From Fimbriosthenelais zetlandica (lineage: Eukaryota), in assembly GCA_977030845.1 (NCBI GenBank), contig OZ365117.1, positions 3,038,001-3,102,000 on the forward strand: a stretch of DNA of 64,000 bases, read 5' to 3'. The position numbers were made by a program, and so were the translations under genes. The stretch's first letter is position 1, and every line of letters begins with the position of its first letter. The notes beneath the pieces are model-generated. The model was given only the letters and a program-made list of their open reading frames with translations. It searched no databases and was not told the DNA's origin. This document shows positions 24,301-57,300 of the stretch, in pieces.

Positions 24301-27300
24301 TCAGATAATTAGTTCTAATCTACAAGTGCGAAACTTAGTGCATATTACTTCATAAACTGATCTAATAAATTCTAGAAACAATATGTCATGCGCAAGGAAA
24401 TAAAATTCAAAATGTAATCAACAGCAAAATAATGATATATGTAAAAGCTTGTAACGCAAACAGGAAAGGATTTTGAAACAATAATATTGTACATAAAGAC
24501 TGAAAACAAAGACAGCGACGATTGAATCAAATAGTGGCACAATATAAAGACAAAAGTTCATCAATACAATGACAAAATAAAGTAAAACATGACAATGTAT
24601 AAATGTCAATACGGTCTCTTATACACTTGGGATATATGGAGAGGGAATGCACAAGTTGAATGTAGAAGTTGGATTTTGTCTGTCTATTTTTTTATGAGTA
24701 TTGGAAGCTGAAGGGTGAGACTTATTTTCTTATATGGAACAATGTTGTATAGACAGAGAACAAGGAGTTCCAAAGACGAAGCAGTCCATATACGTTGACA
24801 CAATAAAGACGAACAGTTCGAAAATAAATCAAAATCAAAAGCAATAATGCTCTCAAAATCACTCAAACTAAATAATTAGGAATGTAAAAAGTTTCAAAAA
24901 TAAAATTCAGAATCCTGTCAGGACTTTCCTGATATACACACAAACCTAGTTAATCCGGATGATTCGAGATCCGGACGCAATTTGATGGGAACCAAATCAT
25001 CTGAATTAACGGGGTCAGAATGTAAAATCTTGGAGAGTAAAGAAGGGAAAATGAGAGATGAAAGAAAGATGTACCTTAGACTAAATGACATACTTATGCT
25101 TATAGACATGAAAAGACATTCAAGCAACTGAAAAAAGACATCCAAACAGGCCAGAGATGGGCATAATGATAGAATGGTCCTTATCAGCAGTCCGGATGCA
25201 TCATTCATGTGTCATACCCTCTATTTTCACTTCAGCCTTCGTCTCGTCTTTGGGAAGTTTTGCGCTGATCTTGCAATCCGCAGGACAGTCCTTGATGGTC
25301 AGTATGTGCTTTTCACCCTTCTTCTCTATCGTCATATTCTTTCCCGGTTTCAGCGGTTTCCCATTTTGGAACCACTTTACCTCAGCGTTTTCCTTGTTCA
25401 CCTCGCACTCAAGTACTACAGTCTCTCCCTTTGTTATGTTACGGTTTGAGAGAGGGACTGTGAATTTGGCGTCGATCTCTGGAAATTGTTAAACCAAGCT
25501 ACACATTTTAGATTTAGGAAGTTTTTTATTTAAGCTCAATTGAGTTAAAAGTGTGTATTCATCAGAAATATGAAGCAAAATGAATACTGCAGGAAAGTAA
25601 CTGGAGTGTGGGTACCCTACAATAATTACTTAACATTTAAATGTATTTTATTGACACATTTTGTCATACAAAGATCCCAAATATTCAGTTCCACACAGTT
25701 GGTTCTGCAGTAATCAATTTCTTATATTTCCCAAACAGAATCTAATCTATCACATGTGAAGTGAACTTTTCAGATAGCTGTCAAATTGACATAGATATCT
25801 TAAATGTCTTTGTTAATCTCTAGGTTAGGTAGAGTAGTAGCAAGCAGTTAATGGGAGAGATCTAGATTAATTTTAAACTAATTCTTAACTGAGATCAATT
25901 CGACTTCAAAGTGACGCCTCGAAAACATTTCGGAATGAAAAATATTGGTAATACACTTTGAAAATGTTTATTTGATATTTCCGTCCTTACAAAATTAAAA
26001 AAAAACAATATGGAATGTTTATTGTGTTTCTTGGAGACATATTTATCACAGTATCCTCCAATTCCTGAAACTCTGGTCCTTCTTAAAGAAGTTTCCATCT
26101 TTAATAAATAATATCTGTTTAAACATCACTCAGTAGTAAGAGCAATAGCATCACAAAAACAAAAGTAAAGGTGGCAACACACCATGTTCTCTCATGTCAA
26201 AAAGCATGCGGTTGATTGTCATAAATAGTAATGTGTTCTTGTGAGTAACTGTCCACTGTGACATTACATGTACATGTCTTCTGGTTTTGCACAATGACGC
26301 AGGAGTAGGTTCCCGCGTCATCTAGCGTACAGTCTCTGACAGTGAGAATGTGTCTCTGACCATCCTTGTACAGTGACACCCTCTCATCAGCTGTGATCAT
26401 CCAGTCATCGTGAAACCACATGATGTCACCGTCACGGCTGTTAAGGCAGCATTCAAGGTCAAATGGGTCACCTTGAACAAGGTGAAGGTCATGCATTATA
26501 TTAGTGATGAGGAATTCTGCAATAGAAAACCTGGTTAGTTAGTTATGTGTGGGTTCTTTCTACGTTATATTTTTCAAGGCAAGGTTATTATCTTAACATG
26601 CAGTAGGATGATTAAACTTGTTTGTTAATACAATTTTTAGAAAGTGCGTCTATTATTTTCAATTGATTAAGTATGATGTATTGTTAGTAAGAACCAAGCA
26701 TCTAGCTACATGACAATGCATTGGCACAAAGGCTGTTCATGGCCAATTGTACAGCCATAAAGATTAGTTCTACAATGTCTTCTAAGACTAACGCCTAGAA
26801 AGGTTCTGCTGAAGACAAATCAACAATAGGTCTATGTCCCATCTTCAAATCTAAAAGACCTGAGAATAGGAATACATAATATACCCTGGAAAAAAGAGTG
26901 TTTAGGTAGAATTTGCTGAAAGAGGAAAGAGTTGCCTGCAAGAGAAATCTTTGATGATGTTAGAGTTGGATTAGAATTAAAATAAATGAAAACACTCACC
27001 GTCAACCGTGAGTTTGCCACTAGACTTGATATCTTCACATTTGAATGTGTATTCAGCCTGGCTGTTCACCTTGGCCTTCACAACGGTGAGGAAGTACTGG
27101 TTTCCTTCACACCGTATCTCAAATGCGTCGTCTGTTGGCTTGATTTCCTTTCCGTCCTTGAGGAAAGTGAATTTCTGGCTGGGTTTGTTTAGTTCTACGG
27201 TGAATGTGACAGTCTCCTTCTCGTTACATCTGATATCCTCCATGGGCTTCACCAGTTTCAGTGGCATGTCTGAGTAGAGAAAAAGTTTGAGTATTAAGTC

Positions 27301-30300
27301 TTGTTTCAGGTTTTCAATTAGAGCTTTTGTGGGTTGGGATAGTACATACTTTTCTAACGACAAAATTAATAGATTTCATTTAAGCAAAAGCATTTACTAA
27401 ATTCAAAAAAGTGTTGGTATTTATCTGCATAACCACATTTAACAGAAAATATATAGATTCTTATCACAAATAACATGAACTGGCATATATATGTCAATGA
27501 TAGACATCGTTTGTACATTCAATTGTGCAAGAGAATGTCATCATATTTAAGCATATCTTACAGCTTGTAAAAGGTCTAAGAGACAGAAACTGATCGTAAA
27601 GACAGAAGATTCAGATGTGGATTGCTGGTAGTTTGACAACCAATCGTGAATTCTCTGCGTTCTCCATTTCAGAGAAGAAGAAAAGAAAAAACAAGAAGGA
27701 GAGTGGAAGAAGAAGAGCAGCAGACAAGGTAAGTAGCCTAATGCCTTGTCTTTATATTGAGGGCCTACACATGAAATATCTCTAAGATGCCAGAGATGTA
27801 GTTTGGGTTTTAGCCCGACAGTCTCAATGATCTTTGAGCAATTTCAGGCAGATTTCATTGTTTCATTCCGGCAACAGAAATAGTGTGATCCATGCTGACG
27901 TAAATTACCCTTCACTGCCAACGTCGCTTCTGTCGTCTCCTGGCCAACCTTGGCCACATACTTGGCAGCTTGAGATTTAGTCGCACCACTTATGACAAGT
28001 TTGTGAACTGGTCCTTCCTGAATTATCTTCAGTTTCTTGCCAGTTCCTTTCAGTAACTTGCCATCTTTGTACCATTTGACCTGAGCGTCAGGTTGGTTCA
28101 CCTCGCATTGCATGGTTACATTCTCATCTATTACAACTGTCTGCTCACTCAGGGGGACAGTGAATTTAGGGGCCATCACTGAAAACCAGGGTTCCACAAA
28201 AGTTTTAGTCAAAACTACTAACATCTAATCATGTGTAGGTGGATAGACATCTGATTTTAAGAGTGCAGGTACTGATACAACATTAGAGGGAACATGAACA
28301 AAGTTCTAAGTGCATTGTACATGACTTTAGTGCAAGTATAGGAAGGAATTGAAAAGTAAATATGAACTTATAATGATTAGAACTTAGTTAAAGTTAAAAC
28401 AGTTAACAAAAACAACAACAAATTATGGATCTGTGTAGTTGTGTGACTAACTAGTTTAAACGGTATGAGATACTAGTGTGGAAAACATGAGGAAAACTCG
28501 TGTGAAAATCTACACTTTGTCCAAACTAACTTGGACTGAAACTACCATAGGAATGTACCCTGGTTTCGGTCCGAGTTAGCTTAGACAGTCTATAGTTAGT
28601 TAAGATTTTATCTGAGATGGAGACTGGGACACATACCTTCCACTAGGAGTTTGGCTGATGTCTTCTCATCATCGCGGAGTTTGGCTGTGAATTCTCCAGC
28701 ATCCTCCTTTGGTACATCCTTGATGATGAGGCGATGCACCAGGCCATCCACCTCGTACTTATACTGGTCTGAAGGTTTAAGTCTCTTACCCTTACGAAGG
28801 AAGACTACGTCAGCGTCAGGTTTAGACACTTCACATTCAAACACCACCGTATCATGCTCCTTAGTTGACTGATCGGTAAGCGGCTTTGTGAACACTGGTG
28901 GAAGTTCTGAAAATTCCATCAAGTAATATTGGTTTATAATAATACGATATTTTTCCTCAAAAAACCATGATGACCAAATTGCTTTTGAATACTATTCAAA
29001 CATACAAGTTTTAAAAGTAGATAATATTTCAAAACTAAGTGATTCTAATGAAAACACTTGTACTATGTTAACATTTCTATCGATAAACCTAATATGGGTA
29101 AGGGAGATTGAGTAGACAATAAAATATATTTAGACAGAAAATCTAGACTTAAGAAAAATCTAATAGTTCATCTTACTAGCAATTACTCTAACTAATAGAG
29201 AATTTCAGAAAGAAATCCATATGTTAGATAAGAGGATTTTGAAAGCTGACATCATTCTTGGTACTGGTATGTCTATCATTCTATCATACTCACTGACTCA
29301 GAAACCATTCTACTATATGGTCTATACTTTATCCTGTACTAAGTATTTCTTAACAAGACAAAAGTTTTTCTATTCATTATAATCTAGGGGACAACCAATG
29401 TGCTCAGGAAGTTTTCATAGGAGAATTTTTGGGGTAAGGTACAAGTTCTTACTTCCCAGATCTGGACGGAGGTATTAAGGAGTATTTAGAATGAATAATA
29501 TCAGAAGATTTATAAAGAAAATCATGGAATCTTGAAATTAAAGAAAAGTATTAAAACAATAAAGCAGGGAGGAATGGAGACACTTCTTGCCTTATTCCTT
29601 GCCTTAGTAGACAAAGTAATTCTATGGGTTGCCTACTATATTGACCAAAACAATTGAAGCTATACACTAAATTATAAACAAAAATATAAAACAAAAATAC
29701 TTAAAGACAAATTGTGTGTAGCACTTGAAAAAATATTCTACTCGCAGGAGAATTTTTCATGGGGCATGGGACATGAAAAATTGTACTGGTAAAGGCATAA
29801 AAACACCCAAAATAAAGGGGGGAAAAGACAATAAAATACCAAAAATTAAAACAAAAATTTGCGAGATGATATGGGAGAACCAAATCTAAAACAGGGACTC
29901 AAAATATTTCTCTTGATAATTCTAATAGTTATTTTAGTCCTTAAATAGCAGTAACCATTTTTAGAACCAAACTTTTGGGTTAACACATCTTAATTCGGTA
30001 CTCCCTTATCAAGGTTTCGAACAACATTCTTGCTGTCGGAACTGCAGTCAGGACCATAGCCAAAACCCGTGAATTTCTGACTATGGAACTAAGTGCACAA
30101 AGTAGCACAACTTGCAAGCATGCTATTCCGGATGCGCAAAGCTCCACCACTAAATGTAATAATAATAATGCACTTATGGCCTTAATGTCTAAGGGTCTAC
30201 CTTTGACAGTGAGGGCAGCCTCGCTGATGACGAGGCCTACTGTTACTTTATACAACCCCTCATCTGAGAGCACGGCGGATTTGATGTGAACTTTATGAAC

Positions 30301-33300
30301 GCAACCCTCGATGAGAACGTTTATCCTATCATCAGGCGCAACGTTACGGCCGTCCTTGAACCAATTCAAAACCACGTTTGGCTTGTTGACCTCTACTTCC
30401 AAGGTCACTGACTCGTTGGTCATCACTTCTTTAGCTTCAAGGGGCACTATGAATTCTATGGGGATTTCTGTGGGGCATAAAGGAGTAAAAGAACAAAAAT
30501 GTAACTCCAGTTGATTGTTTGTGTGTGTCTATGTAGCACAACCAACCGATTTTTGTTCATGGTTCATCATGTTATGATGTTATAGGTAATTATTTTTTTT
30601 GTGGATGGTGAAGTGAAACGACAGTTAGGAGTAAAACTACTGGTGGATATCCATAGATATGTGATAGAAGCATCTACTGAAAATGCAGTTTAACGTTCAC
30701 AAGAATGACTTCACGGCAATTAAAACAAATTCCAATTTTTATTTGCTGCAATCCTTTTTACAAAATTAAATTTGCCCACTTAAAAATATAAACCTTTTTG
30801 ACAAGCATTTCTGAAGTCATTCTTGTCCAATAATTGTATGTAAAACACTGACAGCCAAAATTAGCATAGACCTTCGTTTGAAACATTGATATTTCCAAGA
30901 TAAAATCAAATTGGATTCTTTTTGGACAAATTTGCTAGGCCTAACATGCGAAAGTTTTCACCTATGCTCATTCTGGCTCTGTAAGTTATGCCTCCTCTTT
31001 GAGGAGATAGAGAAACAAACTACCATTTCTATAGAAAAACAGTAACTTTTGAAAAGTAATTATTCTATTCTACACACTCTACAAAAGGTTAATCGAGTTT
31101 GTATCACATATATGATTCAGTAACTATAGAGTAAAATAGCAAAACCATCATTAAACAGTTTATTTTACACCTTTCCTTGCGAGCAAAACAGTGTGCATGT
31201 GCATGAAGGCCAGAGTTTTTTTTTGTAACTATGATATCCTGAAGTTTATATGCATTTCTCGGCCCCTATACAGGAGTGCATACGAGCATTACTCGCGTGG
31301 AAAGGGTGAACAATTCACGATGCAGTATTAAGGATGTCAGTAAAGTTGAGGTCCTACCTTCCACCTTGAGTTTAGCGGCGCTAGATTGATCGCCAATCTT
31401 AACGCAGTACTCAGCATCGTCATCTAGTGCGGCATCGTGGATCAACATCTTGTGATCGCATCCATCAACGAGTATCTAAAAAAATAGTCAACTTTGTTGT
31501 ACATTTATCTAATAAACACTAATGTCCATCCAATTCTCATCAAAGCAAGCCCTGATGAAGCCCCATATGACTGACCTTAATAAGGGCCCCACCTATTATA
31601 AAATCATAAAGCGCCTTCTACACTACACCGATCTGGGACCGATATCATTATCTTAATGATCTCATCAGATAAAATTGAAATAAGATTAGAAATCGGCATA
31701 ATGTGTATGGAGATCAGATCATGATCGGTGTACAGTGTGCATGTGATCTGACATGTCAGATCTGATGCGATTTGGAAGCAGATCTTGCACGTCAGATTTT
31801 GTTCTGATCAGATCATAAATCGGTATAGTGTAGAATGAGCTTAAAGCCCGATATCCACTGTACGATCTTTGAGGACACCGATTTTTGTGATCGGCAAAGA
31901 TCAAAACAAAATCTTTACGGATAGTTTCTCTATTGATTTACCATTGAAAAATCGGCGCCGATCCCAAGATTTTGGCATCCACCAGCCCGATAATCGGAAC
32001 GGATCTTCTTTGTGGGTCCCGATCGCCTAAGATCGCAAAATCGGGATGAAAATCGTACAGTGGATGTCGGGCTTAAGTTAAAGGCCTGACTCACCTTAAT
32101 ACGGGCATCTACACTGACCATCTCCTGGCCGTCCTTGTACCATGTGACCTCCCTGTTAGGCTTGCTGACAGAGCAGGCCATGGTCACCTCGTCATGTTCC
32201 TTCACCACCTGGTCCTTCAGTGGCATGGTGAACACGACTGGCTCCTCTGTTACCGTAACAACAAACATAACGTTACCACCGAGTATCAACTAGTTAATGT
32301 ACAGCGCAAAAACTTAAAATGCATTTAACAACAGTGGGGGAAAATGTTGATCTTGGCCAAATTCTTGTCTGGGGTGCATTATACCAAGGCCAACATCAAC
32401 ATCTTGACCACTTATGTTTAATGCCAATATATACACATGATGGATAATTGTTGATAGAGGATCATTTGTCTCAGATTTACTCAATTTATCCATTACACGT
32501 GAAGTCGCGCTAACATTTATAACATAAAAGTTGCGTATAATGGCACAAGATTGCACATGAATGCGGGACAAAACATGATAGAACCAAAGTACAGGAGTTT
32601 ACATCAATTAAAATAAATGGGTTCTTATATCAATGAAGATTTTTCCAAATTATAAATCGGAAAAATGTAAGGAGGTCAGAGAGAATTTGTTGAAGTCAAA
32701 ATAAAATTTCTCTTACCACTCTAATTTTGGAGAGGAAGTGTGAAATATTTTGAACGTATTAGTCCAAGTAAACGGTTAATATGAACTAGAAGTTTGGCTG
32801 GTGGAATAGTATTTCAAGTGGAAAATTTTTAGAAGCACGTGAATTTCAATTTCATGAGTAGAATAACCGGTGCTATCTAATCTATGTATAAAGGGAAGGG
32901 TGAAGTGATCATTACTGAACTGTATGGCGGTGTGATTTGGAAAATATTTGGGTGGTTAATTGGTTTACTCAACTGGTACAATAAATGTTATTACAAAATG
33001 TTAAAGACGTGATAACTACATGTAAAATAGGAAGATATAACGAAGGGACAGGAACGGTACGCGACAAATTGGACAACTATGAAAAACGGTGTCAAAGATC
33101 TAAAAGGACAAAAACAACAACCAAAAGGTTTATATAACCAAGGCGATGGTTATATTCCTTTTGTCACAAAAAACAAATCACTAATCACTACTAAGATGTG
33201 ATGGACTGAGCAAGCGCCCAGATATGGCCAGAGATATTTTGTCAATATATGATGAAGATTACCATCCTAGTTTGATAATACAAACTTACTGCTTTCCACA

Positions 33301-36300
33301 TAATTGGGCCAGTCAATATCAAAGGACAGCCATGAATTATGAATTAACTGGCCTGATTGTATAAAAACGCTTTAGTCTATGGTTATACAATGGCCAGAAT
33401 GTCTTTAAGATATTTCAGGACATTGATTTAACAGAAGTATTTGGCCCAGGCGGGAGGAATACATTATTTATGGACGGTTTCTTCATGTATAATTATATCA
33501 AAGTATCTCTGTCATTCCATGACATCTAACAATGTATATAACAAGCATGGTTGTCGTAGCGCATGTCGCAGCGTACCCAGGACAGTGAGTTTCCCACTCG
33601 TTTTCTTTCTGCCGCACACAGCTGTGTACTTAGCAGTATTCATCAAAGCTGCATCGCTTATGATCAACTTATGTACCACACCCTCTTTGACAAGTTTCAA
33701 TTTTTTCCCTGTGGCTTTTAAAGGTTTGCCATTTTTGTACCAGTCTACTTTAGCAGTAGGCCGACTAACTTCACAAGTCATAGTGATATCTGCAGTTTCA
33801 AAGATAGTTGCGTCAGAGAGGGTTTTGGTAAATTTAGCAGGTGGTTCTGGAAAAAAAAGACACCAGACAGAGGCATGAATAAGAATCAGAAAGCTGAGTA
33901 GCTTTGAAGCTCATATTTTCTGAATCTTATTCATGGATTAGGAAAGAACATTAAAGGAAGCATTAAAGTTTCTTCCTTTATTTGTTCTTAATAGTCTTAA
34001 GATCATCTAGATCAGAAACATCATCTAGATTAACTTAGCCATAGAGAGAGAGCGCCAGAGATAAGAGAAAGAGAGACTGACAGAATAAGCATAAAGGCAT
34101 AGGAAAGACATCCATGCGTAGAGTCCTTATATCTGCATTGACGTAGATAACTGGCATGAAATATATTGACATTTACATGCAGTAACAAGGTTCAATATGT
34201 ATCATGAACATTCTTATACATACTAGAGCATTCTTATGCGCAATATATAGTCTCATTCTATAGCTATTTCAATATCTAATTGGATAGCTAATTGAACAAT
34301 GAACATAACAAGAATGATTCACATAGTATTCAGAATAAAGCAAACATATATATATATATATGCAGTTCTATTACATTAACTAAATACCTTGTGAAGACAT
34401 ATACAACTAAACTATATACTTTTACTATTAGAATTAAAGGGGAGGAACTAAGGGAGGTGGGCCTACCTTCAACAATAAGGTTGGCTGCCGATTTATCTCC
34501 TTCTATTTTGGCAACCACAGGAGCGGAGTCGGCCAACAGACAATCTTTGATGATCAGGCGATGGACGGCTCCTTCATCGACGATCTCATATTTGTCGCTT
34601 GCTTTGACAGGCTTGCCGTCCACCATCCATTTCACCTTGCCCGGCTTGTTCAGTTCACACTCGAAGACTGCTTCTTTGTGCTCCAGAAGATTGACTTGTT
34701 TGATGGGCTTAACAAATGCCAGTGGTTTTTCTGCAGGCCGAAATAGAATTCATTAAGATAAACAGTCCTATTAAATTAATTCCTTTATTAATAATAAAAT
34801 TATAGCAAAAGTAGCATTCAAAATTAAGAGTTTGAACTAGGTTCTAAGCATTTTAAGACTTAAACTGCACAAAGAAGAAAGTAAAGAATAATTTGAACTG
34901 TAGATGTCCCTTGCATTCAATCGCTAGCAGAAGATAAATTATAAATAAATAAGAGATGAATTCATGACAGTAAGAATGCTTTAAATACAAGCAGCGCGCA
35001 AATAAAAGAAGTAGATAATACATACAGCTAAACAAAGATATAAATCAAGCTGAATTTGTATCTCAATAAACATAAGTCAATGTCATTCAATGCGCAACAA
35101 AGACGGCAGCTGGCGCACATCATTTCATTTTGAACCAAATAGAACTAAGTTTGCAACAATCATTGCTGATCAACATAAATAAAATGAATAATAAGTGAAT
35201 ATATGTGGTTAGACTGACCTGCTGTAGCCTTCACATAGATTCTCTCACTCCTCCTGTATCTCTTACTCCTACTCTACAGTTTTACTTTGTTATATTGATA
35301 TATAGAAGGTTGTCTTACCTCTCAATCGACCACACATGTACTCAGGATACTTTAAATTAAGTCTCTTAATCCATTTAGGTTATTCAGAAGATTAGAAATT
35401 GATCACTCGTCAGTGATGAAGATTGCTAAGGGTTTGCTATATTGTTACCTAGAATGAATGGTTCTTATCCAAGAGTTGAGGGAAGTTTGTCAACGTTATT
35501 CATCTGCAACAACTTGATTTACAACTTTATGGAAATTCAAAGGGGTTTAAAACTAATCAGAAAAGGGCCTTAGGTATTTTAGACAAAGTTGAACGAATAA
35601 GAACTTTTTATGACTAAAAGTTTTTATCTAGGCTTACCTGTGATCATTCGAGTAGAAGTCTCCATTCTTATGTCTGCTGACCAAACTTTGTTGTTGTGGT
35701 TAACAAAAGTGACACCTTTATCCCCCACAAGACTTTGCATAGACAAAACATAGGCCATACAAATCAGGTAATATATATGCCACTAGAGGGCAAAGCGAAA
35801 TAAATATTGTCAATGAAAATATAGATGAACTAAAGAATGAAAATGAGATTCCAACAGGTGAACTTAAAAGGTGGAAAGTTGTATGAGAACTGAGGAAGAC
35901 TCAATAACAAAAGCAGAGAAAAAGGGAGAGAAAATGAAAATAAAAAGATTGAAAGAGGAACTTAGAGAGAAATGTGACGACGAGGAAGAAGAGACTGAAC
36001 ATGCAGTACTGGTGACTGTAAATTAAGAATACATAAATAAGAAAGGAAGCAGTACTGAAAGGACAAATAAGGAAACATAGAGGGGCATGACTTGCCAATG
36101 GAAATAGTGAGGGAAGTGTTTTGTTGAACCTTGAATGAGAAACATTCTGACCAGTATATGCATGTAAAAAACATCAACTTAAATATCCTGAATCTGGATG
36201 CAAAATAAACAAAATAAAAGTTCCAGTTAACTACCAAAAAGTAAATTGTATAAAATTATACAGCCAAATGAAACTGTCGATAGATTTGAAAAGAGATTGA

Positions 36301-45300: not shown

Positions 45301-48300
45301 CCTTTTCAGCTTCCTTCTTTTCCTTCCAGGTCATAGCCTTCTTTTCCTTAGGAGACTCTGGCTTTTCCTCTTCCTTTGGTTTCTCCTCTTGTGGGGTTTC
45401 CACCTCTTTAGGTTTCTCAGGCTCCTTAGGCTTTTCAGCAGCTTTGGCCTTTTCAGCTTCTTTCTTTTCCTTCCAGGTCATAGCTTTCTTTTCCTTGGGA
45501 GATTCTGGCTTTTCCTCTTCCTTTGGTTTCTCCTCTTGTGGGGTTTCCACCTCTTTAGGTTTCTCAGGCTCCTTAGCCTTTTCTGCTTTGGCCTTTTCAG
45601 CTTCCTTCTTTTCCTTCCAGGTCATAGCTTTCTTTTCCTTAGGAGATTCTGGCTTTTCCTCTTCCTTTGGTTTCTCCTCTTCTGGGGTTTCCACCTCTTT
45701 AGGTTTCTCAGGCTCCTTAGGCTTTTCAGCAGCTTTGGCCTTTTCAGCTTCTTTCTTTTCCTTCCAGGTCATAGCTTTCTTTTCCTTAGGAGATTCTGGC
45801 TTTTCCTCTTCCTTTGGTTTCTCCTCTTGTGGGGTTTCCACCTCTTTGGGTTTCTCAGGTTCCTTAGCCTTTTCTGCTTTGGCCTTTTCAGCCTCCTTCC
45901 TTTCCTTCCAGGTCATAGGTTTCTTTTCCTTAGGAGATTCTGGCTTTTCCTCTTCCTTTGGTTTCTCCTCTTCTGGGGTTTCCACCTGTGTGGGTTTCTC
46001 AGGCTCCTTTGGCGTTTCAGCAGCTTTGGCCTTTTCAGCTTCTTTCTTTTCCTTCCAGGTCATAGCTTTCTTTTCCTTAGGAGACTCGTCTTTTTTTGGA
46101 ACTGGAACATCTTTAGCCTCGGCCATGGCCAATGTAGTCTCGTCTGGCTCTTGAACCGTAGCGGTTTCTGACACAACTGGTGAATCTACCTTAGTCGTTT
46201 CCTCTTCAGGCATAGTCAGTTCAAGGGCAGCGACCCCAGACAGAGACTTTGGCTCCTGGACAGGCTTTTTAGGTTCCTTGGGTTCTGCCTTTTTGGGCTC
46301 CTTGGGTTCTGCCTTTTTGGGCTCCTTTGCCTTGACATCTTCAACCTCTTCTACAGGAGCAACTGCCATGACAGCTTCTTTGACTTGTTGTTCAGGTTGA
46401 GCTTCAACCTTGGGCTTTTCCTCTGTTTTTGGTACATCCTTGGCTTCGACTGATACAACTTCAGTGGCAGGGACTTCCTCAATGACAGGGGATTCTTCAG
46501 GAGTGACAGGGATTTCTGCAATACGGTGCAACAGGATGTCAACATATACAACCACCACCAATCTATCGTGACAGTATAAACTGAAGGGCTCGGGAAAGTG
46601 TGTTTGGTGGTGCAAACATGCCCACAAAAATATATTGTAAAACACATTTCCACCTTGCCTTGGGGTGATTATGTCCAGAGGCAAAGCCCCTTCAGTTATA
46701 CCCTTAGCCGCCTATAGGACAGCTTAGCACATGCGTCACCCATGCAGGTTTGGCTTATACTTACCATGCATTATTTAGCAGCATTAATATACTACCTACT
46801 CACTTGCAGCCATATGAATAAACCTATTATGTGAATAGGATGCTTACCTGAAATATAAAATAAGAAGAACCATGCTTTTATTATATAATCAAAATAAAAA
46901 TTTAACTGAAAGATACACCTTGGAAGCCTTTGTTTTATATCTAGATAAGAATTACAAAATGAAAGAGATCATCAACAAAAGTAAAGATATAGAAAATGTA
47001 GAAACGTATCACAGCCATAACAACTGAACTTTCTGTATAACAAAGCAGGACAGAATGACAGTTGAAGCAAACAAAATTAGACATAAACAAAGGGGAGGAG
47101 GGGTTAGGAGGAATTCATGAATGTGGACATGAATTGGCACATGTCATGAATGATAAGTGATGCCTTGAAATGGGGAGAGCAGAGGGTATGTCTATCTGAT
47201 CATGAACTAGATCTAAGTGCAGTAAATAATGAACGATATTCGCTCAAACACTGTCCATTATTTAACAATGTTTGGTTAGAGAGAACGGACTAACCAACAT
47301 AACACAATGAATTCATGAATCATAAAAGTGATTCATGTCACATTGCGATACAAATATTTTATCCTGAGAGACAAATATATAAAAAATATATATTATTATA
47401 TATATTTTTCTTCCTAATATTCCTATATATTACTTCGTGGAATGATATTCAATTCAATTCAATCAACTATCTTGATTGAATTGATGATATTTTGGTTGAA
47501 AATATATCAGAATTTCAGAGCTAATAGTTACATGCCTATGGATAAGATATATGTCATGCTTCATACCCTTAAGTTCGAGTTTGGCCTCGGTTTTACACGA
47601 GCCAACTGTTGCAGAATATTCTGACACTTCTTTCGGGGTAGCATCTTTGATGATAAGTCTATGTACCAGTCCCTCTTTGACAATCTGAATGTTTTTGCCA
47701 GTGCCTTTGAGCTGTTTTCCAGCCTTGAACCACGTGACTTCAGCGTCAGGTTTGTTCACGTGACATTCAAACACGACCTCTGTATGCTCAGGCACAGATT
47801 TGTCAGTTAGGGGGACAGTGAATTCAAGAGGCTGGTCTGGAAGTAGGGACACAAATAGGTAGGTAAACACATGGGTTGTGGATATAAGGGATAGGTTCAA
47901 ATCGAATTATATCTACCTTTACTATCATTTACTATCATGATACTTTCTAAACAATTGTAACTGACTAAATCGATGAAAACCTAAAAGATCCCGTACCCTT
48001 CACATCGAGTTTAGCCTTTGTTTTAGAGGTACCAACTGTCGCTGAATACTCTGAAATATCTTTGGCAGTAGCATCTTTGATGATAAGTCTATGTACCAGT
48101 CCATCTTTGACAATTTGAATGTTTTTGCCAGTGCCTTTCAGCTGTTTGCCAGCCTTGAACCACTTTACTTCAGCGTCAGGTTTGTTTACTTCACATTCAA
48201 GCACGGCTTCAGTTTTTTCAGGGACTGTTTTGTCAGTTAAGGGGACAGTGAATTCGGCAGGTTTTTCTGGAATGGGAGACACATGGCGGAAGTCACAAAA

Positions 48301-51300
48301 TGAACTAAAAAAAATCAACATGATAAAAGTAAAGATGTAGAAAAAGTGCAGACACATTCTTAACTGATAAAATAGCGTGAAATATGCTTACGGAGATGTA
48401 GAAATGAAATGCATTTAAGAAAGAAAATGGACCTTTATATCAAGATGCAGAACAGAGTTTCAAGAAATATTTTTACAGAGAAAGTTAAGAATAATCATAG
48501 GAGGTTCCTGGTACTTACTGGTGACAATGTATCAGTTTCTCAATATAGAAAACTGGAAGGAATCTTAGATTATATGATGGAATATTCTCAATGTGTGCTT
48601 CGGGTATTTTCAATGTTAATGGTGGATGAAAAGGATGATATAGAACTCAACAGAAACCTTCATACTTCAGAGAATTTGTATCAATGTCCAAAACTTCAAA
48701 TGTCAGGAAGGGTCTGTTTGAGTTCATTGGACATGAGTGAGTGAAAAAGATGAATAAATGTGATGTTGGGCTTTCAAAATGTGATGTGGACGCCATCTGG
48801 TCATCAGCTAAAATTGAAAAAGAAATCTAACAGATGTTAGTTCCTGAAAGAGAAGCTTATGTCATAAATACGTAAAAAAGGATGTGAAAATCTTACCTGT
48901 TACCGTCAGTTTACATGATGTTTTGTTCAGGTCGTCCAGGACACAGTGGTATTTGTCCATGTCAGTCATCTGCGCTTTTTTGATGACGAGTTTGCGGAAT
49001 GTCTTATCCACGACCATTTCATAATCCTTGCCAGGAGTAAGAGGCTGGTCTCCTTTATACCATGTCACAGTGGCTTCAGGCTTGTTCACCTCGCACTTCA
49101 ACACTGCCTCCGTCCCTTCTGGTACTGTCACGTCCTTCAGAGGTGTAATGAATTTATACAGTGAAGCTGGAAAGAGAATGACATACATAAGGACCTATAA
49201 TTTATTTTATTTCTCGAAAAGTTTGTAAGAAAATCGGGCACAGAAACGTAATGAGAGGTTTCCTTATACTGGTGGAAACAGAAGAAATCCATCCTTCATC
49301 CCAAATAAATTAAACTTTATCTGTATTAAATTAAAATTTGATATCAAAGGTACTGAAATTGTCCATTAAATTAAGCATGTAATCATATATGATAATTCTT
49401 GCGGGTGGGGATTTTAATTGAAAATAAAATCATACATTTTATAACCTTTTTGTATAACTCACAAATAAAACATAACAAATGAACCAAAGAGTAGTGAACC
49501 AAATAAAACATAACATAAAGCTGCTTTCCAACTAAAAATTAAGCAACATAAATAAATAAAGTGAAAGAACACATGAGTCCTTGGTTTGTTTATAAGTAGA
49601 CAGACCTACCTTGTGAATTGTCGACCACAGTGACATAAGCATCTAATGATCTATGAGCAGCACGACATACATATTCCCCTTCGTCTGTCTCATCAACATC
49701 ATGCACAATCAAGACATGCACAGTCTCGTCACACACAAACGTATACTTATCACAGTTCTCCTTGGTTAGTTCTAGACCATCAAGGAACCATACAGTCTCA
49801 GCATTGTCTTTAGACAGTTCAACAGTTAAAGCGAAGTCAGAACCTTCAGTGACGTCCTTATCATACAAAGGACGGAGGAAATACAGCTCCTCATCAGGCT
49901 CAAAACGAGGGTCATCAGCAAAGTCCGGCATATCGTCTCCAACACTTAAGCTTGATGCATATTTCTGAAGTGGGATTTTCTGTCTATTTCTGTCCAGTAG
50001 TGGACCATCGACATCAGTGGGTGTCAAGCTTCTTGGCTGAGGGCTCGGAGTTAGAACATGGCAGCTGGATGGCGAGGAGTCCACCTCACACTCAACATCT
50101 TTATAAAATTTTAATTTTATTAAATCCTGGAATTTACTTAGCTTTAGCAGTATGTATAATTATAAGTACTTGTATGATAAAATGTGTTTCATGAAATCCA
50201 CCTATTTATCTTTTAATGTCAGTAATCTATGAAATGTTAAGAGATAATTATGTAAAAGTATAAGACTTAAACTTAGAATCTTATACTATGTTCTTATACT
50301 ATTGTTATATTGACGCATTGCCTTCCGTCTGTGTCCACTATTCATCACTTATCCAACTTAAGTATCTTAAGTCTAAGGTCTTCAATAAATGCAGAATAAG
50401 TCCAACTAGGTGTAGTTGATATTTAAAAAGTAAAATTATTTGTATTAAATTAAACATGCTTTTTCATATTATTTTTTATTTCATAACCTTATCAATATAC
50501 ATAAGCTTAGCTCGAAGTTAATTAAGTAATCTATTTATGTTAGTGTTTCCTAATTATAGATTCTTTTGGACGTCCTGTGAATCAAGTGTTCTTCAATATC
50601 ATGGTGAATACAAGGCTTATATGATAACTGTATCTTGCTTTAGTTGTTGCTTGACATGAATGGGTACAATGGCACCGCTTACAATAATCTAAAAGTGTGT
50701 TAATAAATAGTGCAAATGGCTTACATTGGTGCAACAAACATCGACTTATAAATATGGAAGCAGACTTAGCTAAAAGTGTGTGCACAATATACAAGTGCAA
50801 GTACTAACAAGGTGCATTACCACCTACCCACAGTCATCAATATTTACCTTTCCTGAATGGCTGAACTTTAAGAACTGATTTACTGTTCTCTGCCTCTTCT
50901 CTAGCTAGTTCTGCTGGCAGAGACTCAGCGCTTTTAGATTGTATATATTTCATAGCTCTCTGTTTGATACGATTAGCAGTACTGCCCGTTTTACCATTAC
51001 CACCTGAAGAACCGGAGTACTTACTCAAACTTTCAACCGAACCAGAAAACCTGGATTTCATGGGATGACCTGAAGGACTGGAGTACTTACTCAAACTTTC
51101 AACCGAACCAGAAAATCTTGATTTCATCGGATGCCTCTCCTGCTTGCCAGGAGAAATTGATCTAGATCGTTTTGATATTTGTTCAAATAAGTTCATAAAA
51201 CTTGGAAGTTTATCTTCATTTCCAGGATCTCTGCGATGTTCTCGTCCTCGAGTCACAGTAGCCATGAACTTTTCATCTTCTTCCTTGATCGTTCTAGGAA

Positions 51301-54300
51301 TCCTATCCGGCTCTATGGATATGACACTTTCAGAGAAGTCTCTGGACCTTTGGGCAGCACCAAATTCTTTCCTATTTGGTAAGAAGAAACCTGGCTTTGT
51401 CGGTGAGGAGGGCAGTTTATGGGCAGGAGGTGCTGAATCTGGACTCAGCAAAGAAACTGCTTTGTCAAGGACAGTTCCCAAGGGCAAGAGAACGCCTCCT
51501 GTAGCAAGGGTCTGAGCATCTTCTGATATAGTCTTAATGTCTAGGATGTCCTTCACTCTCCTTCCCTTTGTACTTTCTACCTCTGTTTTTAATACTTTTG
51601 TATGTACCTTCCCTTTATAAACTGGCCTGTCTGGAAGTATTTTCTCAATTGCTTTCACCCTTTCATTTCCTCTTAGTCCTAACTTAGAAATTTCAGAGGA
51701 TGCAGCACTTTCAATATTACCAAGTTTCCGACCCATATAACCCAATTGTGAAGGTGGAGGAGAAATATTCTGAGCCCTCATAAGACTAGCCTCAGTGGAG
51801 TGAGTGAAATATTGTATTGGCCTCTGACCTACAATAAAAACATCATCCGTTTCCTCAACATCCTCTGTTTCTACTTCAATAGTTTCTTCGTTTTCTTCCA
51901 CCACCAGAGAGTCAGTATTCTGATGGCTTAGTTCTTTGTTCAGAGTATCTGTTATAGCACTTGTGTTATAATGCGAGACAGAATCGTTTTGTGACAATTT
52001 TTGTGACAATTCTACATCCTGGTCTGATTCAACTGGACCTGCTACTTCAAAAGATGGGGTGTCAAGGTTTGGTAACAACTCGCCAGTAATATCAGATAGA
52101 GAGTCGTTTAAATGTGAACATTCCTCTATCAAATCGACCTCTTTAATGTCTCCATCAGCATTCCCCTTGCTTACATTGAGCTCTACTGCGGCACTTTCTG
52201 CCTCAACAGAAAGTTGAGCACCAAGTTGAACACCTTCTTGTAAGTAAATCTGTTCAGTTTCTTGTACTATATTTTGTTCCACATGCTCAGATACAGTTTC
52301 TTCCTTAATTGGGAAACTCGTGGACCCTTTTTCAGTTAGCACTTTTGATACTACTCTCACGCTTGACATTTCGACCTTTTCACAATTTGAATCATCTTTG
52401 TCCTCCACAAAATCATCAACTTCTGCACTGCTAATTGATTCAGATTTCCACTGAACTTGGCTTGGTATTGAAAGGCTAGCATCTTCCCTTTGTTCTGAGT
52501 CAGTCATTCTCTCACCACCTAAATGGTAGAGTGTTCTACTGACTTTACTCTCACACATTGTTGGTGTGATATTCAACACACTTATGAATTCAGATGAAAG
52601 TGTACATCTCCCCAACTTCTGACTGTCACCCATAGCTAGATCTTGTGATGAACTTTCATCTACATCTACCTGACCCTTCTCATCACTACCAGACAAAGAC
52701 CTTCTCTGGAAACTTGTATAATGTGGACATATTTCCACCTGGACCTTGTTGCCTTCTTGAGAGACAGAGTACAGTTGACAATTAGATACATGATCCACTT
52801 GATCATCACATCTTTTACAGAAAAAACTTGTCACTGGTTTCGCAATCAGTTTCCTGGTGCCCTCGATATGTGTGACTTGGACTACCTTTGTGTCACTCGT
52901 TGGGACGTCCAAGAGAAAGAGAGACGCTGCAGCTTCATCAACACTTGGAGACGCCATGACATCATCAGTACCATGTAGGGTCATGACCACATAAGGTTTA
53001 CTTTCATGAACACTTCTCTCTGGTGTTATCATTGAGGAGTCAAAATTGTACAGCTGGGCAAAGTTCTTCCCATTGCTTAACTTCTTAGTTTTCAAAAAGT
53101 TATCAACTTCTTTTGGTGAGACACCAATCATTTCCAGTGAAATGACTTCTTTCTCAACAAGTTCAACTCCCAATTTTTCAATATCTGATAGAAGTGCCCC
53201 ATTTTTTGCGCTCAGCTGATCTTCCTGGAGTTCTGCTTTGGTACTGACATGAATTATCTCCGGCTTAAGTTCCTCAGACTCAAGATGGGAGCCAGAGATG
53301 GACATGTCCTGATTATCTTTAAGAAATTCATCAAATTCGGATACAGATGACATTTTTAATGGAGGAGTGAAAGCCTCAGATGTGAGGCTTGAATCAAAGA
53401 CTTCATAATCTGATGACAGATCAGCTAGATTTTCCACAGCTTTTGGTCTGCGAGCCACAAACCCCATATAATCACTGTCACCTGATTCCTCCAGTAGGTT
53501 CTCCAGGGAGGATTTGAAGCTGACAGAGAGTGTCCTATGACCGGCTTCCTCCTCGCTTACTGAACCACTAGGTTCACTCATCTCCTCAATAGTAGACTGG
53601 CGCCGTAGACCAACACCAATAATCCGACTATGAAGTTCTTGTTTGGGTGATTCATACATTGGTAGTGAGACTGATGGGTCAGGGGCGTCCTCAGAACCAC
53701 TAGCTTGGTGTTCCCATTCATCCCCTGATGAAGAATCAGATTCAGAATCTGTTGAATCTTCCGAAAGTTCAAGAGTCTCAATAGACTCATTAATAATACC
53801 ATCAGAAGAGGAGGTACTGTTACATGAACGTCCTGAACTGGTATGTTCAGATAAGAGAGAAATATCTTCATCAGAGGGGGACTGTAAATCGTTATCATCA
53901 TTGACATTGGAGGTGTCTTTAACATATCTGAGACATGACATATCATTGAGCATTGACAGTTCTTGTGGTGAATTTATTGGTGATTTGGTTGCTTGAAGGC
54001 TTGACTCAGATGGACACAGCTCTGGTAATTTGTCAATCATCACACTTCCCTCTAGCTCGGCCAGGTTTTCTTCTTCATTCTCATTGGTACTTTCTGGGGT
54101 AGTGGAAAGTGCCTGGTCATCAGAGGGTTCTGTTGTTTGGTAAATAAGACAAAATATTCCTGTCAGTTTCCTTTCAGAAGGAGAGCCGAGATATTAGTTG
54201 ACCTTCACCACTGGGTAGTAGATTGTTAGTATGTTTACCAAGTTGTGATATGGACAACTTCATCCAATAGTCACTGCAGTGAGTGTCGAAATATGTTTGT

Positions 54301-57300
54301 TTTCTGACTCTTCTGTATTCCTGAGTCCTAATACCAGTAAGCGTAGTAAGAAGTGTTAGAGCAGAATTGAAAAGACCATCAACCTCTATTTGTCATTCAG
54401 TCAAGTGTATAAGCGATGGAGTGTGAAGTTGCCTTCAGAAGGGCTAATGCCTTGCCAGGATAGGCAGGATTATTTTATGACTATTCTGGGTTAACTGGCA
54501 GGATAGGTGTTTTAGTGAGTATTATGGGGCTAACTATAATCCATTTATCAAGACATGACCTATCTATAGTTATCTTACGTTTTGTTTTAAAATGTATGAA
54601 TTGGATTTCGTCCATATGCACTTAAAACTTGACTTAATACTTATTTCCGCAATTCAACCTTAAGCTAGATTGCCTTAAGTTTATATAGTTTATGTTGAGT
54701 CGTGCTCACCTTCAACCGTTAACGTAGCGCTTGCTTCTACTGTCCCTGACCTTACAGTGTACAATCCTTCATCAAAACCTGTAGCACCATTTATACGGAG
54801 ACAGCGAGTGGCGCCTGCCGACACAATCTCATACTTCTCACTCTCAAAGATCTCAATGCCATCAATATACCATACCACAGCGGTGTGTGGCGGGTGTACC
54901 TGACAGGTGAACGCTGCTACTGACTCACCTGGTATACAGGTGTTTACTGGGGAGGTAACAAAGTGAGGGACATCACCTGTAGAAAAACATGCACACACGT
55001 CTAGTAAAGATTAATAATATCAACATCTACATCTGGATATTCTAAACATGCAGCATCACAGAGAAACAATCCAGATATGAACACTATTGTTAGTGGGTAC
55101 TAAATGTTCATGAGTTCAATTAATACCGAGTTTTTTGTCTACATTTCCACACAAAATCCCTTACCTTGACAGTATAGTTCGGCCATATTTTCTTAATTCA
55201 TTGTGAACATAACTGAGAAATTTGCTTGCAATGGCATTTCAAAATAATTCAAAAATAATCAAACAAAATAAAAATAAAATGACATGCTTGTAACTTACAG
55301 CATTCATGAAAAAAATAAAATGTGAATACCATTCAAAATATTAAAGTCAGATTGATTGCCGATGAACTAAACAGATTCAAAAACCGAGGATTCCGTCCCT
55401 TGACAAAGTCAGGACCTTACCTGCTTTTTCAACAGTGAGTTTAGCAGTTGTTTTAATGTTCCTCGTTTTACAAGAAACATCTCCAGTGTCCTTTAGAAGG
55501 GCGTCCTTGATGATCAGTTTGTGGATACAACCCTCATGGACAAACTCATAACGATCAGACGGCTTGAGTTCCACATTTTTCATGAACCATTTTACCTTGA
55601 AATCTTCATCATTGAGTTCACAGGTAAGGGTTGCTGTGGTATGCTCTGGGGTCGTTACGTCATTGAGTTTGCCCACGAATTCAGGTACGAGCGCTGTAAA
55701 TAATGGTCATTATCATTATAAGAGGTTTCTATACAAAAGATCTCCCATAGAGCAGTCACTCTAAAGGGAATGGATAGAGTGGTCATTGGTAGGGAAATTG
55801 GAGCCTTAGTTGTTATTGACAGGTTGTATTTCAGAATCAGATGGGGCAATTCACTTCAAAAAGGATTGGAAATTATATTAAGAAACTCATATCTAGTCAT
55901 TAGATATATAATTATGTATTAGACAGTTTGAAAATGTTATTAGACAGTAAAGGTTTCATTTACAAGATTTAAAATGAAGTCATATTCTCATAAAAGAAAA
56001 TATTTTTCATTTTGAGATATAGTTGATAGAAATACTGAGATAGAATGATAGATTCACTACACGGCATACTGGTATAAAGGAGTGAGCATGGAATAGGAAT
56101 CAATCTATCTGAAGGCATACACAGCATGGTGTGTTTGCTTCTAGATAGATTTTCCCCGTTCGGCACATGGCCATTTGGAGAGCTCTAAAAGTGTAGCAGA
56201 AAACACGAATCGGTCAGAATGAGCCTGAGACAACCTCAGATAACCAAATCTATGTTTTAGCCACAGCAAAAACGCCAACCAAATCCATAGGCAGAACGGA
56301 CCAACGTTTCTCTCTAAGCTGCTGGAATTTGGTACAGTGAAAAACATTTGCACTCACGTTCAACAAACAGCTTGGCGGTCGTCACAGATTTCCTGAATGT
56401 TGCCTTCACTACACCCTCATCTTCTGGTCTGGCTACGTTGATACACAGCTTGTGGTGCATGTCTTCAGCAAAGACTTGGTACTTGGGTCCGGGAACAACT
56501 GGTTCATCCTTAACAAACCAGTCAACTGGGATCTTCTTATGTGTGACATCACATTCAAAGATGCCATTCTCCTTTTCACGGATATGTTGGTCCTCAAGTT
56601 CTTTGGTGAATCCGAACTGTTGACAGACATAAGATACCATACATGGTAATTCATCAACAAAACAAACAACTAATCTGAATTGATTACAAGATGGCAATCT
56701 GGAACATGTCAAAATAAAAACGAACCTTGGCCTTTCCGATGTTGAGTTTCTTCGGTTCTTCTTCAGGACCTTCTGGACCCTTTGGTTGCCTCTGATAGGC
56801 TCCCTTCTCCTCCTCGGCTTCAACAGGCTCTTCAGCAGGTTTCTTCTCGGGAGATTTCCTCTTTAGGAGATCAATTTTGTCACGTTTTCTGAGTTCAAAG
56901 CCAACACGCTCTCGTTCCTCTTCGACAACTTCGGCTTTCACTTCAACCAAGGCTTCTGGTTCAGGGCGTTCAACCTTCCGCAGCTTGAACTGCAGACCTT
57001 CGTCTTCACCATCTTTAGCTGAGGCTTTACCCTTCTTCAGTTTACCCCAGTCTACATCATCATCACCTTCACCCTTCTCAAATGAAGCCCTAGAAATGGA
57101 ATTTGTAACATTCAAAAGAATGACTGGCTCTGGAACAGATTTCAATTAGCTCTTGATGTTTGCTCCACTGAGACATGCCCATAAAATCGACCAAGCTACG
57201 AGCAGTGCTTAATTTTAACTCAAAAAGATACAGTGACTAGCGAAAAATCCTTACGTTTCTTTGAGGGCAGCCTTCCAGTCCTCTGCTTCCTCTGCGTTCT

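Follow-up and report, generated by a model that had tools for sequence, protein, structure and literature searches.

Of four intronic elements (E1, E2, E3 and T) in a titin-like gene, only T is a credible candidate route to a shortened protein; E1, E2 and E3 look like chance splice-site look-alikes, in which an AG, a GT and an ATG fall together in AT-rich introns. A preliminary description had proposed E1-E3 as internal start exons and T as a terminal exon, together carving one locus into several proteins. The four elements were confirmed on the sequence where they had been placed, with the AG, GT, ATG and phase attributed to them. We tentatively favour the reading that E1-E3 are unused chance pseudo-exons and that T is a putative alternative last exon, a reading to which we give slightly less than an even chance.

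The window, the whole stretch of 64,000 nt that was analysed, holds the I-band portion of a single titin-like gene, probably from an annelid, which lies on the minus strand like every feature described below. The gene has phase 1-1 Ig exons and includes three giant exons. One of these is unique (50848-54129, 3282 nt, phase 1-1), matching no Pfam family and finding no homologue in a protein search. The other two are PEVK-like. PEVK-like exon 1 (44719-46515) has an Ig domain at its end and gave mostly generic Ig matches in a representative protein search, the best at 56% identity; PEVK-like exon 2 (36657-41447) is 4791 nt long. In a contig from a relative (ENA) the five Ig domains immediately preceding the A-band are colinear with their counterparts in this gene at 50–58% identity, and the layout after the giant exon of that contig differs. 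The relative is too distant for its introns to be compared.

T consists of an Ig part (26250-26516), which is a 267-nt phase 1-1 I-set domain exon, and a tail (26197-26249) of 17 intron-like codons ending in TGA at 26199-26197. The Ig part matches the Pfam I-set family (E=1.1e-11) and a hidden Markov model (HMM) built from the gene's own Ig exons (E=9e-16), and its best PDB matches are Ig domains of cMyBP-C and titin. It has the canonical length, with 89 codons free of stops and frameshifts and with the hallmark Cys, Trp and DxGxYxC residues kept. No paralogue of T was found in its own genome, so T is not a recent copy. A protein search of large collections returned no matching protein, and a scan against metagenomes gave only Ig matches at 33–34%. 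For 25000-31000 (RNA) and for the unique exon (any kind of run), a search of sequencing runs listed none.

Splice-site scores were ranked against the real sites of the same gene (46 acceptors and 46 donors), using for acceptors a matrix of positions -15 to -1 from which the exon bases were left out as too noisy. The T acceptor, at 26516, ranks in the 54th percentile and, being in phase 1, is in frame with the preceding exon; the last base (G) of that Ig exon (27000-27269) and the first two bases of T make an in-frame codon. The canonical donor position reads ACA/GTTACT (a slash marks the exon boundary) and scores -6.8, below all 46 real donors. The GC content of the Ig part (0.464) equals the mean of real Ig exons, that of the tail is 0.34 and that of introns 0.346, and exon-like composition stops exactly at the canonical donor position. 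The tail holds no other in-phase GT before the stop. T thus combines a normal in-frame acceptor with an in-frame stop that no usable donor precedes, as a terminal exon of a truncated titin would.

Three poly(A)-signal hexamers follow T (25967-26105): ATTAAA at 26105, AATAAA at 26023, which is followed by a T-run, and AATAAA at 25972. Three such hexamers thus fall within 237 nt, whereas the rest of the sense introns average 0.94 per kb (nominal P ~0.002). There is also a donor-like site, ATG/GTGTGT (26175-26185, score 9.5), whose last exon base, 26183, lies 14 nt past the stop; splicing from this donor would make T an internal exon of 334 nt, with the stop retained. With an intact Ig domain, a dead donor, an in-frame stop and a hexamer cluster, the suggestion that 26197-26516 is a terminal exon is plausible from its sequence.

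We propose that T is an old, intact Ig exon with a working in-phase acceptor, whose canonical donor has decayed. If T is spliced in, the frame would read through 17 codons of former intron and then stop. The likeliest use of T would be as an alternative last exon with intronic polyadenylation, where we infer both the inclusion and the polyadenylation. Inclusion would give a shortened protein comprising the Z-disc side, the PEVK-like spring, seven distal Ig domains and T, and transcripts that skip T would give the full-length protein alongside it.

That T is a functional truncating exon, and hence comparable to Novex-3 or Kettin, we regard as possible at close to even probability. The Novex-3 exon of titin is large and contains much unique sequence, whereas T would contribute a single Ig domain and 17 residues and is placed after the PEVK-like spring. 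As a candidate T resembles Novex-3 in that it would carry its own stop and end the protein early. In vertebrate titin Novex-3 is an alternative terminal exon within the gene, with its own stop and 3' end, producing a short N-terminal isoform (PMC4720518, citing Bang et al. 2001; PMC13649281). Sallimus has no A-band part at all, flies and worms encoding the two halves in separate genes, and for the short Sallimus isoform or Kettin of Drosophila there is RNA evidence (PMC9886281). The present gene differs in that its I-band and A-band parts appear to be continuous, and T is a candidate read from the DNA sequence. If real, T would add a further example of an isoform type already known, a truncating last exon after the spring region.

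A plausible alternative, although a somewhat less likely one, is that all four elements are inert, E1-E3 being chance occurrences and T an Ig exon whose donor was lost recently and which is by now skipped and beginning to decay. Skipping T keeps the frame, since T is 267 nt long and phase 1-1, and the GT, the A at +4 and the T at +6 at its canonical donor position have the look of a relic donor. A T-like exon is also not seen in the distant relative, where no orthologue was found among the Ig ORFs read through in the contig (50–58% Ig identity). Poly(A) hexamers form clusters elsewhere as well, as a second cluster at 50217-50115 shows. Against recent loss, at least two to three donor positions have changed and yet all of the Ig codons are intact with their hallmark residues; a rough hand calculation favours maintained coding about 5–12 fold. 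Of the Ig domains detected in the window, moreover, T alone lacks the terminal G/GT.

Turning from T to the three proposed start exons, E1 (55165-55212, 48 nt) lies in a 444-nt intron flanked by Ig exons 55693-55421 and 54976-54710. It has an AG acceptor and the donor AAG/GTAAGG, and in the upstream frame it reads VMFTMN and a stop, followed by ATG GCC ... CAA G in phase 1. Its donor (score 12.2) is at the 85th percentile of real donors; its acceptor (score 1.0) is at the 4th percentile of the 46 real acceptors, and the good acceptor ascribed to these elements does not hold for E1. Nor does E1 sit directly before the unique exon, as had been claimed for the positions of these elements, the second of the two flanking Ig exons separating them. 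The GC content of E1 (0.31) is intron-like.

E2 (46765-46847) lies in an intron of 1051 nt that precedes PEVK-like exon 1 and is 83 nt long, or 44 nt with the donor at 46804 (CAA/GTGAGT) in place of that at 46765 (ATG/GTAAGT); its phase-1 ATGs are at 46813 and 46771. The acceptor is at the 59th percentile. The strong donor attributed to E2 is found at 46765 (96th percentile), but the option at 46804 scores below every real donor. The E2 'acceptor', CAG/GTAAGC, itself resembles a donor site. A recursive splice site was considered for this motif (46850-46842) and rejected, because such sites belong to very long introns and the host intron is only 1051 nt.

E3 (35638-35782, 145 nt), in an intron of 1926 nt that follows PEVK-like exon 2, has a TAG acceptor (22nd percentile), the donor CAG/GTAAGC (43rd percentile) and a phase-1 ORF of 40 codons. 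About 400 nt of pyrimidine-rich sequence precede it; the possibility of an inverted PEVK copy ahead of E3 was rejected. E1-E3 as relics of dead Ig exons were ruled out, T being the only one of the four elements to match the Ig profile. The introns that hold E1, E2 and E3 are each single copy in the genome.

Intronic pseudo-exons are pairs of cryptic splice sites that are not used. E1-E3 resemble them in their intron-like composition, in breaking the frame and in a density like that of random sequence and of the antisense strand; they differ in their donors, which rank in the upper range (43rd to 96th percentile of real donors). An open in-phase ATG is present for 31% of all intronic GTs, and phases 0 and 2 have the same base rate as phase 1. 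We applied neutral thresholds, set at the levels reached by 90% of real sites and chosen without reference to E1-E3. On the sense strand they yield 18 pseudo-exon donors over 16.2 kb, of which four allow a phase-1 start, compared with 3.4±2.0 in random sequence; on the antisense strand 9 of 17 pseudo-exons are start-capable in phase 1. With thresholds tuned to E1-E3 a phase-1 ATG is present for six of seven strong sense pseudo-exon donors against 0.7 expected, a post hoc excess that came from setting the thresholds on E1-E3 themselves and that disappears at neutral ones. Several internal starts therefore find no support, their ATG and phase matches occurring at chance rates.

The same introns hold an element of the same kind that had not been flagged (41660-41858), in the intron before PEVK-like exon 2 and with an ATG in phase 1. 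Its acceptor (9.3) scores above those of all of E1-E3 and its donor (9.9) above that of E3 only. Another element comparable to E1-E3 falls within a MITE that has thousands of copies. The practical lesson is that matches of ATG and phase beside cryptic splice sites are chance-rate events in these introns.

One or more of E1-E3, or the element at 41858-41660, might instead be a regulated NMD cassette that tunes titin output and not a start exon; we consider this unlikely. Inclusion of any of them breaks the frame, but the frame is also broken by 18 of 21 random-like pseudo-exons, so that a premature stop on inclusion of E1-E3 is uninformative. The pyrimidine-rich tract ahead of E3 would suit such a cassette, as would a marginal excess of strong sense donors, 9 against 3.9 expected (P ~0.05), seen at one threshold. 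This excess is absent at other thresholds, and donor-like sites showed no significant enrichment at most of them.

If an invertebrate titin did have a set of internal starts and ends, this would bear on the relation between the single vertebrate gene and the split genes of flies and worms, and on the age of Cronos-like and Novex-3-like isoforms. A set of such starts and ends in this gene is unsupported. That two or more of E1-E3 are internal first exons which, with T as terminal exon, yield several sub-titins is very improbable. The motifs are there as described, a terminal-exon role for T is plausible and all four start-capable sense pseudo-exons at neutral thresholds sit in introns flanking giant exons, a pattern noticed post hoc; against this, the motifs occur at chance level, the acceptors of E1-E3 carry no weight since a first exon needs none, and the in-phase ATG of E1 is preceded by a 5-codon upstream ORF. 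The CpG observed/expected ratio averages 0.49 over the window and is lower at both E2 (0.33) and E3 (0.29), neither of which has a raised CpG signature. It is very improbable that this spiralian titin-like locus is cut into an N-terminal 'spring' protein that stops at T and C-terminal proteins with their starts at E1, E2 or E3, an arrangement that would mirror within one gene the fly and worm split into I-band and A-band genes.

The architecture of Cronos also differs from that of the proposed start exons. Cronos, the internal-promoter isoform of vertebrate TTN and the only precedent that is established, starts 110–257 bp upstream in an intron, its Met being contiguous with the exon and no spliced mini-exon being involved, and is supported by 5' RACE, H3K4me3 and DNase data (PMC4720518). 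The likeness lies in the idea of a transcript beginning within the gene, just before a distal I-band Ig exon, and adding a few unique N-terminal residues, and E3 is in a roughly comparable region, past the spring and ahead of the distal Ig domains. E1-E3 would by contrast be separate mini-exons with donors, and none has an intronic Met in frame and contiguous with the exon. The upstream introns of the boundary exons 54976, 46515 and 34730 contain no in-frame ATG; such an ATG lies upstream of 11 of 46 other exons by chance.

The minus strand of the window carries a titin-like gene, in a source genome of 447 Mb and 79 contigs. Its tandem Ig exons are ~267-273 nt long, each in phase 1-1. There are three giant exons on this strand, a unique exon of 3282 nt (54129-50848) and two PEVK-like exons (46515-44719 and 41447-36657), followed by a distal Ig run and then Fn3/Ig A-band repeats. 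One A-band exon has named relatives among annelid, brittle-star and hemichordate proteins (43-56% identity), with further contigs reaching 67-68%. A large protein collection, searched within the length limits it sets, holds no homologue of the unique exon. A pair of similar proline-rich open frames lies in introns (59848-60135 and 23672-23989, window coordinates); these are probably copies of a repeated element.

A proposed terminal exon of this gene, here called T (26516-26197, minus strand), runs from an in-phase acceptor to a TGA. Its Ig part (26516-26250) encodes a full I-set domain (Pfam E=1.1e-11), the best solved relatives are Ig domains of cMyBP-C and titin, and a search of 22 introns found no Ig-like sequence besides T. 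The acceptor lies 267 nt from the canonical Ig-exon end position, in phase 1-1. The sequence at this position is ACA/GTTACT (the slash marks the junction), which scores -6.8, the weakest real donor scoring 4.5; of the Ig-like domains that were detected in the window, every one but T has G/GT at its end. The GT, the A at +4 and the T at +6 look like a worn donor, in which no fewer than two positions (-1 and +3), and probably +5 as well, are changed. The Ig part has the GC content of real Ig exons (0.464), the 17-codon tail is intron-like (0.34). The genome contains no paralogue of T, which is therefore an old and distinct domain rather than a recent duplicate; within the length limits of the protein collection T has no homologues there. 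All 89 codons are still open and the hallmark residues are kept, and a rough calculation puts maintained coding ~5-12 fold ahead of neutral decay.

If T is kept, yet unable to splice onward, it can only end the protein. We therefore lean towards T being an alternative last exon, a tentative reading that comes close to an even chance. The rival reading, that T is a recently dead exon which is skipped, is a real possibility but a somewhat smaller one. As an alternative last exon T would terminate a product that comprises the N-terminal side, both PEVK-like exons and seven distal Ig domains. Known parallels are vertebrate Novex-3 and, in Drosophila, the Sallimus isoform whose alternative stop comes early; T is a fair candidate for a truncating exon of this known type.

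Three hexamers lie on the sense (minus) strand 3' of the T stop, ATTAAA at 26105, AATAAA at 26023, which is followed by a T-run, and AATAAA at 25972. This density, 3 in 237 nt, compares with 0.94 per kb in the rest of the sense-intron sequence (nominal P ~0.002). Across 25479-56357 these hexamers are scarce in sense introns (18 against 27±5 expected; 65 antisense), consistent with a very long gene avoiding premature polyadenylation, and a second cluster after the unique exon (50217-50115) shows that they clump. Given this clumping, the hexamers are suggestive only as putative poly(A) signals of T. A donor-like ATG/GTGTGT, with its last exon base at 26183, lies 14 nt past the T stop; if this donor were used, the protein would still end in T.

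The nearest readable relative (ENA ERZ25070786, contig ctg146868l, pieces L005:1-5600 and L004:1-10700) has the same general arrangement, with a giant PEVK-like ORF, then ~22 Ig domains and the A-band. Its giant ORF before the distal Ig run has a 3424-residue product, and the last Ig domains are colinear with those of the window gene at 50-58% identity. No T orthologue was seen among the Ig ORFs read through in this contig, every one of which ends in G/GT. The interval from the relative's giant exon to its first Ig holds a further two exon-like ORFs that are not Ig. The relative is too distant for comparing elements of the size discussed below.

The preliminary description placed T in a modular isoform system, in which three minus-strand mini-elements, E1 (55212-55165), E2 (starting at 46847, donor 46765 or 46804) and E3 (35782-35638), would act as stop-then-start exons for several sub-titins. 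The positions of all four elements were confirmed exactly, with AG, GT, ATG and phase. E1 is not directly before the unique exon, as one Ig exon intervenes. In the upstream frame it reads VMFTMN (six residues) and a stop, followed by a phase-1 ATG in good context; E2 shifts the frame and has a phase-1 ATG for either donor, and E3 has a phase-1 ORF of 40 codons. Matrices built from 46 curated exons, with leave-one-out scoring of real sites, bear out the reported good acceptors and strong donors only in part. E2 with donor 46765 ranks at the 59th (acceptor) and 96th (donor) percentiles of real sites and E3 at the 22nd and 43rd; the E1 donor is at the 85th percentile but its acceptor at the 4th, and donor 46804 is below every real donor. 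A CAG/GTAAGC at the E2 start (46850-46842) scores well as both acceptor and donor, which is the recursive-splice-site motif, in a host intron of just 1051 nt. Directly upstream of E3 is a pyrimidine-rich tract of ~400 nt (35790-36150, sense strand, 66-79% C+T). A 36-nt E3 variant (35673-35638, acceptor score 4.9) would be an in-frame micro-exon of 12 codons, placed after the spring and ahead of the first distal Ig; it is one of 5/57 acceptor-donor pairs that are in frame and open, about the chance rate by a rough, uncomputed estimate.

The comparison with chance covered all 22 introns, 16.2 kb in total, that lie between 56669 and 25218. A phase-1 ATG with an open frame precedes 31% of the 833 sense-strand GTs, and 30% have one in phases 0 and 2. 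The upstream frame is broken by 18 of 21 pseudo-exons, so frame-breaking by E1-E3 is uninformative. Donor-like sites show no clear sense-strand enrichment; at scores ≥8, for instance, there are 12, against 8 antisense and 7.7±2.8 in random sequence, and the sole nominal excess falls at 9.3, which is E3's own score. At a neutral threshold, with acceptor and donor both as good as 90% of real sites, there are 18 sense pseudo-exon donors and a phase-1 start is possible in four (54239, 46765, 41660, 35638), compared with 3.4±2.0 in random sequence and 9/17 antisense. A large excess (6 against 0.6-0.7) is limited to thresholds set on E1-E3 themselves, and is selection after the fact. A further pseudo-exon (41858-41660), absent from the preliminary description, has a phase-1 ATG in the intron before PEVK-like exon 2; its acceptor (9.3) exceeds each of E1-E3, its donor (9.9) only E3. 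All four start-capable elements are in introns adjoining giant exons, which carries little weight since it is post hoc and pseudo-exons are denser there overall.

Cronos, the internal-promoter isoform of vertebrate titin, has an intronic start site 110-257 bp upstream in zebrafish, mouse and human, and its Met, placed 7-12 residues ahead of the exon, runs on into it without a break, as supported by 5' RACE, H3K4me3 and DNase data (PMC4720518). This design, in which the intron immediately upstream of an exon holds an in-frame ATG that is open into the exon, occurs in our gene at 11/46 curated exons (28224, 48357, 49188, 43769, 42277, 32268, 28919, 12206, 11737, 4575, 3039), where it arises by chance; none is found before the three boundary exons of the modular model.

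E1-E3 showed no Ig match, and were rejected as relics of Ig exons. Their introns are single copy in the genome and their GC is intron-like (0.31-0.39). CpG o/e is 0.67, 0.33 and 0.29 for E1, E2 and E3 (window mean 0.49). If E1 served as a leader, its in-phase ATG would be preceded by two other ATGs and a 5-codon ORF. Having an acceptor lends nothing to a start-exon model, since first exons do without one. With start-exon candidates at chance rates the modular system is unsupported, and E1-E3 are best read as chance pseudo-exons.

Another start-type element sits within a MITE-like repeat of ~240 bp with inverted ends, which has ~2000 first-look genome matches (40 scored, 86-94% identical). Three copies of the repeat in introns of the titin-like gene (31842-32074, 21466-21695, 15361-15610) are the CpG-richest spots in the window, and two of them lie in introns that interrupt an Ig or Fn3 domain of the kind usually contained in a single exon.
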